Below the pieces are notes generated by a model. It made no database searches. It saw only the letters and a list, made by a program, of their open reading frames with translations, and was not told the origin of the DNA. A stretch of DNA of 64,000 bases, taken from positions 186,001-250,000 of IMG/VR virus record IMGVR_UViG_3300017917_003143; one strand, 5' to 3'. Positions 36,161-57,426 of the stretch are shown piece by piece. Position 1 is the first letter of the stretch. The number at the start of each line of letters is the position of its first letter. Both the position numbers and the translations under genes were made by a program.

Positions 36161-36400
36161 ATGACTATGAAAGTCATATTTCATTCCTTTACCATGGGCG
36201 ATGTAGACGATATTGATATCTACGTCGCCCAACCTATATGGGAATGGCAACAAACTGACAAGGGAAAATGGGTCATGGCCAACGCCAGCGATCTTAAGTA
36301 TTATACACATGCTGATCACAATACATTTGGGCACAGAGTTACAATACGCGGCGAGCTAGAAGATATCAAAGCGACGGAATATTTTTTAAAATGGAAGTAA
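36161..36400 (+). CDS. hypothetical protein
   Basis: ORF track. Confidence 0.7.
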   Translation: MTMKVIFHSFTMGDVDDIDIYVAQPIWEWQQTDKGKWVMANASDLKYYTHADHNTFGHRVTIRGELEDIKATEYFLKWK

Positions 36401-37104
36401 AAAACAAGCACCATCTATCGTTACTGTTAATGGATCAACGAGCAACATCGGGTCAACAGTTGTGGATCAGTGGCTGTAGTTTTGCACACGGACTAGAACT
36501 TCAAGATCAAAATGATCGATACGGCCAAATTGTGTCTGACTTTTTTAAAATTCCAGTAAGTTTTTTATCTCATGGCGGTGCCAGCATTGAATGGGCCGCT
36601 GATCAAATCATTAGAAGTGATATTCGAGAAAATGACATCGTTGTTTGGGGAATAACTGGTGTTAATCGAATATCACATTTTACCGATGATGGATCATTGA
36701 TACATTTGCTTCCTACAAAGTTCAATGAGAACCATCCTTTCTTTCATACAATACAGAACGAGCTTTGGGCAAAAAATTTCTGGATTGAGCTATTAAACGA
36801 AAAATCCAGAGTACATTATGCTATTAGGTCAATTGAACAAGTGATTTCTTTTTGTTCCAAGATCAATGCAAATTTAGTTTTGTGCTGTCACTCTGAACTA
36901 TCGACTCCAGAGCAGGCCAACATATTATTAGACTACTTGGACCATACCGGTTACTATTTAGATCTTTATCAAACACTAAAACAATCATCACGTTATTTAG
37001 ATTATGCATCAGACAAACGTCATCCGGGACCAGCTACTCATAAAGTTTGGGCAGAGTCTATAATCGATTATATACAGAACAAAGGATTTATCAATGAAGC
37101 ATAA
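36391..37104 (+). CDS. SGNH hydrolase-like protein
   Basis: SGCSFAHG; DKRHPGPATH. Confidence 0.65.
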   Translation: MEVKNKHHLSLLLMDQRATSGQQLWISGCSFAHGLELQDQNDRYGQIVSDFFKIPVSFLSHGGASIEWAADQIIRSDIRENDIVVWGITGVNRISHFTDDGSLIHLLPTKFNENHPFFHTIQNELWAKNFWIELLNEKSRVHYAIRSIEQVISFCSKINANLVLCCHSELSTPEQANILLDYLDHTGYYLDLYQTLKQSSRYLDYASDKRHPGPATHKVWAESIIDYIQNKGFINEA

Positions 37105-38074
37105 AATTTTAGTAACAGGTGGACTAGGCCTGATTGGGCACAATGTAGTTCGACGACTATTAGATCTTGGCCACGAAGTATCAATCACAGATACACGAAC
37201 CAACTATGGTCTAGTGCCGCAAGACGAACTGGACTATCTCATGACAGAACGCCGTGCAAAGATACCCGAGATGGATCTACGCACACACACCATAGACATA
37301 GCTGACCAATCCGGAATCGATTGGTTGATCAAGCATTATCAGCCCGATACTATCATACACATGGCCAGCTTTCCTAGACAAAAAGTGGTCAATGTAAATC
37401 CCATGGCAGGATCGCGGGCAATGAGTGAAGGATTATTAAACCTACTAGAAGCCGCAAAGAACAATCATGTGTGCAAGTTCATATATATTAGTAGCAGTAT
37501 GGTCTACGGTGATTTCACTGATGATGTCACCGAGGATGCCCAGTGTCGTCCTCAAGGACAGTACGGTATCATGAAACTTGCAGGAGAATGGCTTGTCAGA
37601 GATTATAGTAGGCGTGGTTTTTTTGATCATGTCGTTATTCGTCCTTCCGCTGTATACGGAGAACTCGATGTTGAAGATCGTGTTATTTCAAAGTTTTTGC
37701 TGACTGCCATGCGTGGTGGCACACTCAAAGTAAATGGTGCCAGAGAAACACTAGACTTTACCTATGTAGGTGATGCCGCAGATGGTATCGTGGCTGCGGC
37801 TTTGAGTCCCACAGCCAACAACAAGATTTATAATATAACCAAGAGTCATAGTTGGAGTTTGCTGGATGCGGCCAATCTTGCTGTGAAGATAGTGGGTCGT
37901 GGCACAGTAGAAGTGCGAGACAAAGATGCAGACTTCCCTAGTCGAGGTGCTTTAAATATTGATGCGGCTCGTAGAGATTTTGGCTACGATCCCAAGGTAG
38001 ACATCGAAGAAGGTTTCCAAAGGTATCATGAGTGGCTTAACAATTCCGTTTACTGGTCTAAAAAAACAGTATAA
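37094..38074 (+). CDS. NAD-dependent epimerase/dehydratase
   Basis: VTGGLGLIG; SSSMVYG; YGIMK. Confidence 0.95.
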   Translation: MKHKILVTGGLGLIGHNVVRRLLDLGHEVSITDTRTNYGLVPQDELDYLMTERRAKIPEMDLRTHTIDIADQSGIDWLIKHYQPDTIIHMASFPRQKVVNVNPMAGSRAMSEGLLNLLEAAKNNHVCKFIYISSSMVYGDFTDDVTEDAQCRPQGQYGIMKLAGEWLVRDYSRRGFFDHVVIRPSAVYGELDVEDRVISKFLLTAMRGGTLKVNGARETLDFTYVGDAADGIVAAALSPTANNKIYNITKSHSWSLLDAANLAVKIVGRGTVEVRDKDADFPSRGALNIDAARRDFGYDPKVDIEEGFQRYHEWLNNSVYWSKKTV

Positions 38075-55508: not shown

Positions 55509-56313
55509 AATGCTCCTCTAACTCTTTCGCGAAAATCTTTTCATGATAGTGTACTGCACCTTGCTGTTCTACTGTGTTGATCCGTATGCGCCCGCTGACT
55601 AACTCCCAAACAAACTCGTCTGTCCAGGGGCGAGCATCTGTCTTAAGATAATTGATGGCTGGTTTCATGTGTATCATATTAGGCCAATTGCCAGGCAATG
55701 TGACTCTTTCTTGGCTCATGTATTTGGCAACCATGGCATAAATCATATCAGTGTTGGCTGGAACACTGTCACAATACTTCAGAGTTTGCCGCACAGTTGG
55801 CCAATTTTCAAAAAATGTTCTTACCAACTGCCAAAATTCTACAGCAGTTTTACTTAATCTCCAGTAAGTGATTGCATTGTACACATCTGGTAAATCGTTA
55901 TCATCAAACAACCGACGGTACGCTCGACTATTACTTTCATCATTGAGATAGTTTCTTACGCCCTGGCTTATTACTACATCTCGGTGTTCAAACCATGACC
56001 ACCAGTGATCGATATTGCCCGTGATGATCATGTCTGCTTCTAATTTGATCGTTTCTCGGAAAGGACTGGCTTGGAATGCTTGCCAATCATTGGCCAATTT
56101 CCATGTACCACCAGGGTCTTGGTCCCCAAAAGGAAAAGGACGCACGATATCAAACACTGGATCGTTCTCGGTGGAATCCGTGACCAAACAAATCTTGCAA
56201 TCGGGCATCCACCAGCGCAGACTTTTTGCCAAGGCGCGAGCGCAAGCAACATAGTCATCTCGACCATTGTTACTAGCCAATATCAAATAACCACGTTCAA
56301 ATTCTACTGCCAC
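55480..56313 (-). CDS. GT-A fold glycosyltransferase-like protein
   Basis: SPFRETIKLEADM. Confidence 0.7.
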   Translation of the reverse strand: MAVEFERGYLILASNNGRDDYVACARALAKSLRWWMPDCKICLVTDSTENDPVFDIVRPFPFGDQDPGGTWKLANDWQAFQASPFRETIKLEADMIITGNIDHWWSWFEHRDVVISQGVRNYLNDESNSRAYRRLFDDNDLPDVYNAITYWRLSKTAVEFWQLVRTFFENWPTVRQTLKYCDSVPANTDMIYAMVAKYMSQERVTLPGNWPNMIHMKPAINYLKTDARPWTDEFVWELVSGRIRINTVEQQGAVHYHEKIFAKELEEHYGQLLASRS

Positions 56314-57118
56314 AGATTTTCCCCAAGTCAGGTTTGTTCATTACATGCAAATCGCAGTTTTCTAAAATCATTCTTTGATGACGTTCTTTGTTATCAACCA
56401 TGCGAACATAATTTAATTGGAAACGATCCTGCTCAAGTTGATTTAAGTATACATCATAAAACGCTGTAAACAACGGCCAAGGAATGTCAGGTATAGCATC
56501 AGGTATGTGGCCATAAATTGTATTAAGAGCTATGCTGATAGCGTAATCGTTGCGATAAAGATCTTGATTGAATTTGTAAATGCGGCTATAGTGATACCAG
56601 TTAGCTTCGATCATAGACATCATATCAAACACTGATTCAGCCAACTGACTTTTGCGGAAAAACAATACTGTGGCCCACCACATAGGCATTTCAACGTTTC
56701 CAAATCTGGTATCAACCGCAAAGTTGCGTCGATCTGTAACATCAAGCACATACCGATGACAAAGCAAATCTTGATTGCTATCAAACAATACTTTTAGTCT
56801 ATCGCTGGCTACAATATAATCTGTATCAAGAACTATCGTTTCGTCATAAGGAGTAACATCATACGCACGACACCGCCCACGATTATACCAATGAGCACTG
56901 GAGTCAGCATTCATATGATCATATTTACGGGTACCACCACTACGACTTTCACGTATGATTACTTGGTCAAACATTGATGTGTCTCCTGGAGACGAATCCG
57001 TGACTAACGTGACTGGAAGATCAAGATGGCGATTGATCCTAGGCGCGGACCATTGAGCTTGACTCACATAGTCAACTTGATCATTGTTAAAAGCAAATAA
57101 TACAGCGCCACGAGTCAT
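56297..57118 (-). CDS. GT-A fold glycosyltransferase-like protein
   Basis: TPYDETIVLDTDY; RND; paralogous to 55480. Confidence 0.75.
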   Translation of the reverse strand: MTRGAVLFAFNNDQVDYVSQAQWSAPRINRHLDLPVTLVTDSSPGDTSMFDQVIIRESRSGGTRKYDHMNADSSAHWYNRGRCRAYDVTPYDETIVLDTDYIVASDRLKVLFDSNQDLLCHRYVLDVTDRRNFAVDTRFGNVEMPMWWATVLFFRKSQLAESVFDMMSMIEANWYHYSRIYKFNQDLYRNDYAISIALNTIYGHIPDAIPDIPWPLFTAFYDVYLNQLEQDRFQLNYVRMVDNKERHQRMILENCDLHVMNKPDLGKICGSRI

Positions 57119-57426
57119 CGATTTTTACTCAATGTTTCTAATTCTATCATCCAAGCTGTGAGTTGTTCTTGCCAGCGATCATGTGTCAAATGTTGTAGTT
57201 CAGGCACATTGACTCTAACAGGAGTATCATACAGATCCACGATCACAGCTTCTTCTGTAGGGCATGCCTGTAATAGAGTCAATAGTTCTGGGCCAGCGCA
57301 CCACATTCCGCCGCCATAAGCAAAGGTCATTTTGCTTTGATATTTTTCTTTAAGCAGTTTTTTCTGTGTAGCGTGATCAAAACGGCTTTTGATCTCTTGA
57401 GTTAGTTGATTAGGGTCCATGGTCAT
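57115..57426 (-). CDS. hypothetical protein
   Basis: First gene after the minus-strand promoter. Confidence 0.75.
   Translation of the reverse strand: MTMDPNQLTQEIKSRFDHATQKKLLKEKYQSKMTFAYGGGMWCAGPELLTLLQACPTEEAVIVDLYDTPVRVNVPELQHLTHDRWQEQLTAWMIELETLSKNR

Follow-up and report, generated by a model that had tools for sequence, protein, structure and literature searches.

Several virus-encoded machineries glycosylate virion proteins, including those of chlorovirus PBCV-1 (A64R and partners), the fibril glycan clusters of Mimivirus and the Che8-type capsid/tail glycosylation of mycobacteriophages, and these combine soluble glycosyltransferases with sugar-nucleotide tailoring enzymes (SDR, DegT-type aminotransferase) clustered near structural genes. 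They are not known to contain radical SAM arrays, an amidinotransferase or a carbamoyltransferase. A "Nol-like carbamoyltransferase" is treated as a variable auxiliary gene in cyanophages and pelagiphages (P-SSM2, S-SSM7, S-CAM1, HTVC008M), and aminoglycoside tailoring (StsC/StrB1 in streptomycin, BtrN/BtrS in butirosin, TobZ in tobramycin) uses a DegT-family aminotransferase, an amidinotransferase, a twitch-domain radical SAM and a TobZ/NodU carbamoyltransferase. Here, we examined a 64,000-nucleotide window (positions 186,001 to 250,000 of IMG/VR record IMGVR_UViG_3300017917_003143) from a widespread group (a large clade) of uncultured freshwater jumbo phages, in which a 21-kb block next to the tail-fibre genes contains these enzyme classes together with five unusual radical SAM genes. 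We propose that the block most likely builds a heavily tailored glycan, probably to decorate the virus particle.

The initial annotation had listed an epimerase, a DegT aminotransferase, an amidinotransferase, a carbamoyltransferase, at least four glycosyltransferase-like genes, three TEK-F-KP paralogues, an SGNH protein and five radical SAM genes abutting tail-fibre and baseplate genes, and this observation was confirmed, with open reading frames that tile 36391-57426 as described. thyX lies at 35453-36145, and fibre-like genes follow the block at 57499-60574. The features are as follows:
36391..37104 (+), g01, predicted SGNH/GDSL-fold protein, possible glycan O-acyl esterase or transferase
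37094..38074 (+), g02, NAD-dependent SDR epimerase/dehydratase, GalE-like
38028..39122 (+), g03, DegT/DnrJ/EryC1 sugar aminotransferase
39094..40725 (-), g04, two-part protein with an N-terminal internal repeat and a C-terminal GT-A domain paralogous to g16
40694..41743 (+), g05, TEK family paralogue, putative glycosyltransferase with a GT10-like motif only
41707..42912 (+), g06, TEK family paralogue
42909..43952 (+), g07, amidinotransferase (AGAT/StrB1/SxtG/HsvA superfamily)
44018..44041 (-), terminator-like hairpin after g08, marking the end of the minus-strand unit
44110..45597 (-), g08, NodU/CmcH/TobZ-type carbamoyltransferase
45692..46792 (-), g09, conserved protein of unknown function, predicted cyclophilin-like barrel with a helical insert
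46743..48047 (-), g10, N-terminal-twitch radical SAM
48031..49242 (-), g11, N-terminal-twitch radical SAM
49239..50498 (-), g12, N-terminal-twitch radical SAM
50479..51843 (-), g13, N-terminal-twitch radical SAM
51824..52840 (-), g14, TEK family paralogue in a variable slot between two radical SAM genes
52824..54251 (-), g15, N-terminal-twitch radical SAM
54245..55174 (-), g16, predicted GT-A fold (GT2-like) glycosyltransferase with an invariant DGD motif
55161..55508 (-), g17, small protein of unknown function
55480..56313 (-), g18, putative GT8-like GT-A glycosyltransferase
56297..57118 (-), g19, putative GT8-like GT-A glycosyltransferase
57115..57426 (-), g20, small protein of unknown function and first gene of the unit
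57432..57477 (-), intergenic hairpin terminator (57458-57477) overlapping a promoter-like site (57460-57432), between fibre gene g21 and g20
57499..58476 (-), g21, Ser/Thr-rich (32%) fibre-like protein and candidate acceptor
58487..59920 (-), g22, tail-fibre-like protein
59972..60574 (-), g23, conserved virion-module protein (phrog_11259)

The sugar-modifying enzymes were identified by family and structure searches. The epimerase g02 matched PF01370 at 2.5e-43 but fell below all NCBIfam equivalog cut-offs, and g03 matched PF01041 at 8.7e-62, with PseC, below its cut-off, as the nearest NCBIfam model. The carbamoyltransferase g08 matched PF16861 at 3e-51, PF02543 at 5e-34 and phrog_1601 ("Nol-like carbamoyltransferase") at 7e-94, and is 27-36% identical to the cyanophage and pelagiphage enzymes. 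The amidinotransferase g07 had no Pfam hit, but a phmmer search of the PDB returned AGAT (1e-17), StrB1 (1e-12), SxtG and HsvA, over a range of 1e-17 to 1.7e-8, with the catalytic Cys and the His-x-Asp retained in the alignment; two further paralogues exist in the genome. g01 also had no Pfam hit, and its SGNH fold is supported by comparison of its atlas structure to SGNH/AlgX and GDSL clusters (TM 0.64-0.75), by DUF6071/GDSL neighbours and by GCS...DxxH motifs visible in the sequence. An AF2 model of g09 (pLDDT 84) had no Foldseek match in the PDB, whereas VIA gave Z 8-9 to cyclophilins and the AFDB matches were uncharacterised clusters. Family searches of g17 and g20 returned no hit.

The claim of at least four glycosyltransferase-like genes is supported with graded strength. 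The AF2 model of g16 (pLDDT 83) matched in Foldseek the glycosyltransferase domains of HAS, PgaC and NodC, PBCV-1 A64R, and SunS/ThuS at probability 0.9-1.0, as well as phage and giant-virus GT2 models, and its alignment has 75% mean column identity. The C-terminus of g04 is a paralogue of g16, as BLASTP of g04 residues 316-507 against g16 gave 1.4e-9 and the g16 profile hit g04 at 1.6e-14. g18 and g19 are paralogues of one another whose profile gave only weak matches (19 glycogenin hits at E 0.07-0.7), and the three TEK genes, which are true paralogues of a family with nine copies in the genome, share only a short GT10-like motif, with no Pfam or PDB hit for g05. GT8 or GT10 membership is not established for g18, g19 or the TEK family.

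The five radical SAMs all belong to one uncharacterised family, NF033640, which has an N-terminal twitch domain (N_Twi) and nine copies in the genome. Against a cut-off of 170 bits, g10, g11, g12, g13 and g15 scored 286, 346, 390, 306 and 307 bits, respectively, and all nine paralogues keep CxxxCxxC, GGE and four N-terminal Cys, the last an auxiliary motif. In a comparison of the family profile with the PDB, the radical SAM core was closest to 8vpo, a RiPP cyclopropyl synthase (1e-13), and to viperins, and BtrN was only a weak match (E 1e-3). Relative to SPASM/twitch maturases, the domain order is permuted, with the Cys-rich domain first, there is no RRE, and the genes occur as tandem arrays of 5-7 paralogues; no characterised member was found in the literature searched. 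g12 has more than 7,700 metagenomic relatives and g13 at least 600 IMG/VR relatives, the 80 best at 65-91% identity.

Genes g20 to g08 form one 13-kb minus-strand unit, bracketed by a ten-pair stem followed by a T-run after g08 and by the terminator and promoter-like site upstream of g20, the latter two being consensus matches only. The order g21-g20-g19-g18-(g17)-g16-g15-x-g13-g12-g11-g10-g09-g08 holds in 48 of 48 related loci with at least 8 kb on both sides, a grouping far beyond chance. Within these loci, g09, g18 and g19 are present in 48, g08 and g21 in 45, g20 in 41, g17 in 16, g14 in 13 and the amidinotransferase in 7; where g14 is absent, the slot marked x holds an extra radical SAM gene or nothing. 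A DegT gene lies 8-10 kb beyond the radical SAM array in 10 of 11 environmental relatives and 16 kb beyond it in relative G010 (in relative G003, the distance runs across the record ends). Against the complete relative G007 (median shared-protein identity 47%), the block is collinear from the MoxR gene to the portal gene, and g10 (73% identical, 95th percentile), g13, g16, g02 (64%), g15 and g08 fall in the 80th-95th percentile of conservation, like portal and terminase. g23 (phrog_11259 at 1.5e-72) is 63% identical in G007, whereas g01 has no homologue there. By contrast, g21 is only about 30-45% identical among the loci. g22 has PHROG tail-fibre and virion-protein hits and shares its C-terminus with three large proteins of the genome, and g23 is followed by a 4911-aa giant protein and the baseplate wedge.

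In the distant isolate Ralstonia phage RsoM2USA (PMC8504454), a minimal version sits beside the fibre genes: orthologues of g15 (ORF349, 36% identical), g16 (ORF350, 38%), g18 (ORF352) and g19 (ORF353) lie directly beside fibre-like ORF355, which the N-terminus of g22 resembles, and near virion protein ORF356 and the tail sheath, and an SDR annotated as GDP-mannose dehydratase sits among these structural genes. The g08 orthologue lies two genes from the g13 orthologue (ORF202, 51% identical). A marine virus fragment pairs the carbamoyltransferase with an N_Twi radical SAM. Vibrio phage K566, of an unrelated lineage (K566/K567), has four N_Twi radical SAM genes interleaved with two true GT8 genes (PF01501 above cut-off) and a GT4-like gene, although this cluster lies beside LpxC-, PagP- and NAMPT-type auxiliary genes rather than fibres, and no carbamoyltransferase or DegT was seen in a 25-kb view.

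The interpretation offered by the initial annotation, that the phage builds guanidinylated or carbamoylated amino-sugars to decorate its virion or the host surface, is only partly supported. The linkage of DegT, amidinotransferase, carbamoyltransferase and glycosyltransferases supports a sugar-building and tailoring gene set, and scattering of the genes in relatives, which had been named beforehand as grounds for rejection, was not observed. However, the term "island" needs to change, as this is a conserved core block inside the morphogenesis region, collinear in every relative checked, not an accessory one. The streptidine-like amidino step is optional, as the amidinotransferase is found in only 5 of 12 related genomes, and similar genes are scattered at three or more other sites in the genome. 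DNA modification had been considered less likely given thyX and the absence of base-modifying genes in the window, and this view agrees with our failure to find a ThyA-type hydroxymethylase, TET/JBP, C5-methylase or DpdA/TGT, the known entry enzymes for hypermodification that we searched for, in the 99%-complete genome.

We favor, tentatively, a cytoplasmic pathway that builds and tailors an unusual glycan. In this view, a variable arm (the SGNH-fold protein, GalE-like SDR, DegT aminotransferase, TEK-family putative glycosyltransferases and, in some lineages, the amidinotransferase) would make and diversify amino-sugars, and in some lineages guanidino-sugars, from host nucleotide sugars. The fixed g20 to g08 operon would then assemble and tailor the glycan with two GT8-like enzymes, a GT2-like GT-A enzyme, five N-terminal-twitch radical SAM enzymes, a cyclophilin-fold protein and a NodU-type carbamoyltransferase, through radical C-H chemistry followed by O-carbamoylation. 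The most likely acceptor would be a virion protein of the adjacent fibre and baseplate module, such as the Ser/Thr-rich g21. The glycan part of this model is well supported, and our analysis establishes the enzyme families, their intact catalytic motifs, their linkage and conservation, and the absence of both membrane segments and known DNA-modification entry enzymes, whereas action of the radical SAMs on sugars, the order of steps and the virion target are inferred. The glycan itself is likewise inferred rather than observed, adjacency to fibre genes is circumstantial, and a terminator-plus-promoter pair separates the enzymes from those genes. No protein of the block has a hydrophobic 19-mer above 1.6, so none has a membrane helix and no flippase or polymerase is present.

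Two alternatives are less likely. The soluble enzymes may instead modify host LPS, lipid A core or capsule precursors on the cytoplasmic face during infection, using host flippases, for superinfection exclusion or to prevent progeny from sticking to cell debris. Carbamoyltransferases of this family are classed as cyanophage auxiliary or "moron" genes and are common in cyanophages that carry LPS genes, GT2 and GT8 folds are typical of LPS and exopolysaccharide synthesis, and the LpxC and PagP homologues beside the K566 cluster suggest the host envelope. On the other hand, the block has no membrane protein, priming transferase, flippase or polymerase, it lies inside the collinear morphogenesis region in both this clade and RsoM2USA, and its core-level conservation across phages whose fibres diverge to 30-45% identity is not expected of enzymes that act on host-specific glycans. 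It is about as unlikely that the radical SAMs are protein or peptide maturases that install cross-links, epimerisations or oxidations on fibre or baseplate proteins to which the glycosyltransferases also add sugars, leaving sugar-nucleotide tailoring only to the SDR, DegT, amidino and carbamoyl enzymes. About 60 family members in an Elusimicrobia MAG are fused to long TPR arrays, which are protein-binding modules, and a Bacteroidota chromosome places the family in a dioxygenase/halogenase cluster, with two members beside a secreted fibre-like protein with an S74 chaperone domain. These contexts and the RiPP maturase match point to proteins or peptides rather than sugars, and in this phage the array is adjacent to fibre genes. 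However, no RRE domain or precursor-like peptide was seen, viperin, BlsE, MoaA and BtrN, which act on nucleotide or sugar substrates, scored nearly as well as 8vpo, and in three phage lineages the genes are interleaved with glycosyltransferases or a carbamoyltransferase rather than with structural genes.

Two further readings are very unlikely. Phage DNA glycosylation is well established, the genome has many glycosyltransferase-like and radical SAM genes, and some radical SAM and TEK copies lie beside gp32-, UvsX-, DnaB- and exonuclease-like genes, so that these enzymes might decorate DNA bases by an undescribed route to evade restriction. Besides the missing entry enzymes, the presence of ThyX, the routine assembly of relatives from ordinary metagenomes and the position of the core operon in the structural block argue against this. 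The combination of DegT, amidinotransferase, carbamoyltransferase and a twitch-type radical SAM, with the StrB1 match, also recalls the chemistry of streptomycin, butirosin and tobramycin, raising the possibility of a diffusible aminoglycoside- or nucleoside-like small molecule made during infection. Here the twitch domain is N-terminal rather than C-terminal, no cyclitol synthase, kinase, export or self-resistance gene was recognised, the amidinotransferase is dispensable in most relatives, and core-level conservation inside the morphogenesis block is hard to reconcile with a secondary metabolite.

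The window comprises bases 186001-250000 of a 343,632-bp IMG/VR virus record that is 99% complete and was assembled from a pond metagenome. The nearest isolate is the Ralstonia jumbo phage RsoM2USA, at 38-51% protein identity for shared genes, which the authors of that genome place with Xanthomonas phage XacN1, distantly related to Rak2-like phages (PMC8504454). A megablast search of the block against isolate phages returned nothing. Twenty ORFs, g01 to g20, tile positions 36391-57426 and are followed by fibre-like genes, g21 to g23, with the following arrangement:

g01-g03, plus strand: SGNH-fold protein, SDR epimerase/dehydratase, DegT aminotransferase
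g04, minus strand: protein with a C-terminal half paralogous to g16
g05-g07, plus strand: two genes of the TEK family (the "TEK-F-KP" paralogues) and the amidinotransferase
g20 to g08, minus strand: a tight, overlapping series holding small proteins (g20, g17), putative GT8-like genes (g19, g18), a predicted GT-A glycosyltransferase (g16), radical SAM genes (g15, g13, g12, g11, g10), a third TEK gene (g14), a conserved protein (g09) and the carbamoyltransferase (g08)

A hairpin terminator overlapping a promoter-like site separates the fibre gene g21 from g20, and a 10-pair terminator follows g08. These signals are consensus matches, but they neatly bracket a 13.3-kb predicted unit. Only the DNA run from the source pond was found to hold this sequence, and no RNA run was listed in a search that was not specific for RNA. 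No protein of the block has a hydrophobic segment of membrane-helix grade.

Direct family matches confirm the SDR, DegT, carbamoyltransferase and radical SAM genes in the initial annotation. The SDR gene matches PF01370 at 2.5e-43, and the DegT gene matches PF01041 at 8.7e-62, with 209.9 bits against a cut-off of 19.8 and an SFDPMK...GNGG stretch consistent with the PLP-lysine motif of these enzymes, although it reaches no equivalog cut-off that would indicate its substrate. The carbamoyltransferase carries both the Carbam_trans_N and Carbam_trans_C domains above gathering score (118.7 and 173.7 bits), placing it in the NodU/CmcH/TobZ family, but at 137.6 bits against the NodU equivalog cut-off of 1000 it is not NodU itself. 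The amidinotransferase g07 has no Pfam hit, including to PF02274, but matches solved structures of AGAT (1e-17), StrB1 (1e-12), SxtG and HsvA. The Cys of its GGVSC motif aligns to AGAT Cys407 and its His-x-Asp to His303 and Asp305, whereas the residue aligned to Asp254 is Ser and lies at the edge of an alignment block, leaving the third member of the triad ambiguous. StrB1 is a weaker match than AGAT, and a streptidine-type aminocyclitol pathway would be defined by inositol-derived cyclitol genes plus an inosamine-phosphate amidinotransferase. The SGNH/GDSL assignment of g01 is supported at the level of the fold, with structural matches to GDSL and AlgX clusters at TM 0.64-0.75 and with GCS and DKRH motifs corresponding to the block I Ser and block V Asp-x-x-His, despite the absence of a direct Pfam hit.

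Support for the glycosyltransferases is graded. The predicted structure of g16 is confident (pLDDT 83) and has a GT2-like GT-A fold, matching many GT2 enzymes in three structure libraries at Foldseek probabilities of 0.9-1.0, and D63-G64-D65 is invariant in 21 sequences, although neither Pfam GT2 nor a profile search of the PDB gave a hit. The C-terminal half of g04 is its paralogue. Neither g18 nor g19 has a Pfam hit at E below 5, and their profile gives glycogenin (GT8) as 19 of the 20 top hits in the PDB, but only at E 0.07-0.7. The three TEK genes (g05, g06 and g14) are true paralogues in a family of nine in the genome. We considered a GT10 assignment for this family and rejected it, as PF00852 finds nothing in the genome at E up to 10 or in two MAGs, an hhalign comparison to four true GT10 proteins aligns only 14 columns around the TEK motif (P 0.016), and the structural-atlas lead scores 0.79, so that only the motif is shared. 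A PDB profile search with the TEK family and a tblastn search of phages with g05 also found nothing. More generally, Pfam at E up to 5 and PHROGs gave nothing for g01, g04, g05, g06, g09, g14, g16, g17, g19 and g20, with g17 and g20 scanned only to E 0.01 in Pfam and 0.001 in PHROGs, and g18 hit only a PHROG of unknown function. Neither a PDB profile search with g09 nor a Foldseek search of the PDB with its model found a match, and a relative's contig gave no additional Pfam hints. The gene inventory of the initial annotation therefore stands, with "GT-like" proven for two genes and plausible for five.

All five radical SAM genes belong to one family. They score 286-390 bits on the NCBIfam model NF033640, "twitch domain-containing radical SAM protein," against a curated cut-off of 170 bits, and they also match PF04055. 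The Cys-rich SPASM/twitch-like domain precedes the catalytic core, the reverse of the usual order, with SPASM Pfam hits at residues of about 9-96 in g10-g12. The genome has nine full copies, and although pairwise identity to g11 in the nine-way alignment is only 20-29%, all nine retain the CxxxCxxC cluster motif (C123, C127 and C130), the SAM-binding GGE motif (G191-G192-E193) and four N-terminal cysteines. We found no paper that characterizes this family. A further radical SAM gene at window positions 21051-22226 (391 aa), 52% identical in the complete relative G007, matches PF04055 but only weakly matches the N-twitch model. Just upstream of the block, at 30298-33352, lie a MoxR-type AAA+ ATPase and a DUF2201 metallopeptidase/VWA protein, which are 70% and 57% identical and collinear in G007. 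Pairs of this kind often mature metalloenzymes, and thus these two might serve the many Fe-S enzymes encoded here.

The block is widely conserved. The radical SAM gene g13 alone has at least 600 relatives in IMG/VR, the 80 best at 65-91% identity, and g12 has more than 7,700 metagenomic relatives. Among the 48 loci with at least 8 kb on both sides, all 48 carry at least five distinct radical SAM genes plus g09, g16, g18 and g19, 45 carry the carbamoyltransferase, and 45 carry the fibre gene g21. The order g21-g20-g19-g18-(g17)-g16-g15-x-g13-g12-g11-g10-g09-g08 is fixed, with slot x holding a TEK gene, an extra radical SAM gene or nothing. Across eleven long or complete relatives, the radical SAM family has 5-12 copies per record, and a DegT gene lies 8-10 kb beyond the array in ten of the eleven and 16 kb beyond it in the relative G010, whereas in the relative G003 the distance runs across the record ends. 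The amidinotransferase occurs in only five of twelve genomes. Only 178 of 426 ORFs are shared with G007, at a median identity of 47%, yet the whole region from the MoxR gene through the block, fibres, giant protein and baseplate to the portal is collinear. Within it, g10 (73%), g13 (70%), g16 (66%), g02 (64%), g15 and g08 (63%) sit in the 80th-95th percentile of conservation, level with the large 526- and 587-aa core proteins that we take to be terminase and portal. This is a core block, not an accessory island. The giant protein is a 4911-aa ORF (window 60741-64000, continuing to genome position 261476) that carries a CBM5/12 chitin-binding-type module, is homologous in parts to RsoM2USA virion protein ORF361, and is followed by baseplate wedge and hub genes.

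Related arrangements occur in distant phages. In RsoM2USA, ORF348-354 are orthologues of a g16 paralogue and of g15, g16, g18 and g19, with ORF351 and ORF354 occupying the positions of g17 and g20 but giving no detectable match. These genes lie directly beside fibre-like ORF355 and near virion protein ORF356, an SDR annotated as GDP-mannose dehydratase (ORF358) and the tail sheath (virion proteomics in PMC8504454). The g13 and g08 orthologues (ORF202 and ORF199) lie two genes apart elsewhere in that genome. A marine single-virus fragment also pairs the carbamoyltransferase with an N-twitch radical SAM gene, and the unrelated 255-kb Vibrio phage K566 has four N-twitch radical SAM genes interleaved with two genes that pass the GT8 Pfam cut-off and a GT4-like gene. 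The link between this radical SAM family and glycosyltransferases thus recurs in at least three phage lineages. Within the present genome, further radical SAM, TEK, SGNH and methyltransferase groups occur at four other sites, accompanied by a nucleotide-sugar dehydrogenase, a cytidylyltransferase-cupin protein and a B12-radical SAM. They include the following:

genome 53010-70816: a second glycan-type cluster outside the window, with a TEK paralogue, a UDP-glucose/GDP-mannose dehydrogenase, two more amidinotransferase paralogues, a fatty-acid-desaturase-like gene, ClpP and another N-twitch radical SAM
genome 172888-179890: a B12-binding radical SAM, a DUF6071/SGNH protein and two TEK genes flanking a 5'-3' exonuclease
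genome 331743-338364: an N-twitch radical SAM, a TEK gene, a methyltransferase and a cytidylyltransferase-cupin protein, right after gp32- and UvsX/RecA-like genes

The cellular contexts of the family point elsewhere. It is rare in bacteria, passing the cut-off in 4 of 401 Bacteroidota sampled, one of which is the MAG that holds phage-like contigs. In that "Haliscomenobacter sp." MAG, two contigs of 183 kb and 148 kb (NZ_JBBAKG010000001 and NZ_JBBAKG010000003) carry 78-80% identical copies of g12 and whole radical SAM arrays, and look like relatives of this phage binned into a bacterial MAG, which is either a hint of the host or a binning artefact. One 2.9-Mb Elusimicrobia MAG (CAIRTQ01) has about 60 N-twitch radical SAM genes, many in tandem. 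All nine that we scanned are fused to TPR arrays of up to about 700 aa, and an asparagine-synthase-like gene lies nearby. A Bacteroidota chromosome (G091:C2, 1208000-1228000) places two copies in a cluster of five PhyH dioxygenases, a WelO5-like halogenase, a methyltransferase and a reductive-dehalogenase-like Fe-S protein, next to a T9SS-secreted fibre-like protein with an endosialidase-chaperone (S74) domain. The best solved relatives of the family profile are a RiPP cyclopropyl synthase (8vpo, 1e-13) and viperins (6e-11), followed by BlsE, MoaA and BtrN, a ranking that did not separate peptide from nucleotide or sugar substrates. Both sugar/nucleotide and protein/peptide substrates are therefore compatible with these data.

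DNA modification was considered less likely in the initial annotation, and the known DNA-hypermodification routes are not supported here either, as the ThyA-type hydroxymethylase (PF00303), TET/JBP (PF12851), C5-methylase (PF00145) and DpdA/TGT (PF01702) models give no match at E up to 1 in the 99%-complete genome. The PF00303, PF00145 and PF01702 searches detected true members in the control genomes, whereas PF12851 reached its cut-off in none. No classical NTP_transferase is present, so that host nucleotide sugars are probably used. The lack of membrane components and the conservation of the enzymes at core-gene level argue against assembly of a host-surface polysaccharide, but that route is not excluded, and the LpxC and PagP neighbours of the K566 cluster favour it in that phage. 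In favour of a virion target, the block is embedded in the collinear morphogenesis region, and the sub-module that holds one radical SAM, the GT-A gene and the two GT8-like genes lies next to fibre genes in both this clade and RsoM2USA. We therefore favour a virion target. Whereas the gene inventory, the conserved order and the family assignments other than those of g18, g19 and the TEK genes are shown by the analysis, covalent glycosylation of a virion protein is inferred from context alone, as is any action of the radical SAM enzymes on sugars.

The observation of a clustered set of sugar-modifying and radical SAM genes beside the tail genes is thus confirmed, but the interpretation placed on it is supported only in part. 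The block is most likely a glycan-tailoring system and DNA modification is unlikely, as had been proposed. However, the amidino chemistry is optional, the block is core rather than an island, and its dominant and most conserved components are an orphan radical SAM family of unknown chemistry. Virus-encoded glycosylation is known from chloroviruses, giant viruses and a few phages, but a core-conserved pathway with five to seven radical SAM enzymes, a carbamoyltransferase and optional amidinotransferases has not been described in the literature we could search, and there is a realistic chance that it hides new radical chemistry. We speculate, as an unlikely but not excluded possibility, that the fixed g20-g08 operon is a previously undescribed virion-maturation system, in which a tandem array of N-terminal-twitch radical SAM enzymes would work with GT-A/GT8-like transferases and a carbamoyltransferase to install a radical-tailored glycan, or combined glycan and radical protein modifications, on fibre or baseplate proteins of a globally abundant jumbo-phage clade. 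This would give the uncharacterized NF033640 family its first function. The clade carrying the block recurs widely in IMG/VR, and because its cultivable relative RsoM2USA carries a minimal version of the block, the question is open to direct testing. An answer would assign chemistry to an orphan radical SAM family and show whether jumbo phages chemically armour or retarget their fibres.

Elsewhere in the window, positions 2959-22566 hold an array of 32 tRNA genes plus a tmRNA (17303-17716, tag ANDEVYALAA). One tRNA, at 2959-3033, has a CUA anticodon of the amber-suppressor type, and TAG is the rarest stop codon (37 of 426). We considered stop-codon recoding on this basis and rejected it, as code 11 ORFs cover 94.8% of the genome. 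At 24677-26014 the phage encodes a TctA-family tricarboxylate transporter membrane subunit (PF01970, 1.6e-58), an unusual auxiliary gene that has no homologue in G007.
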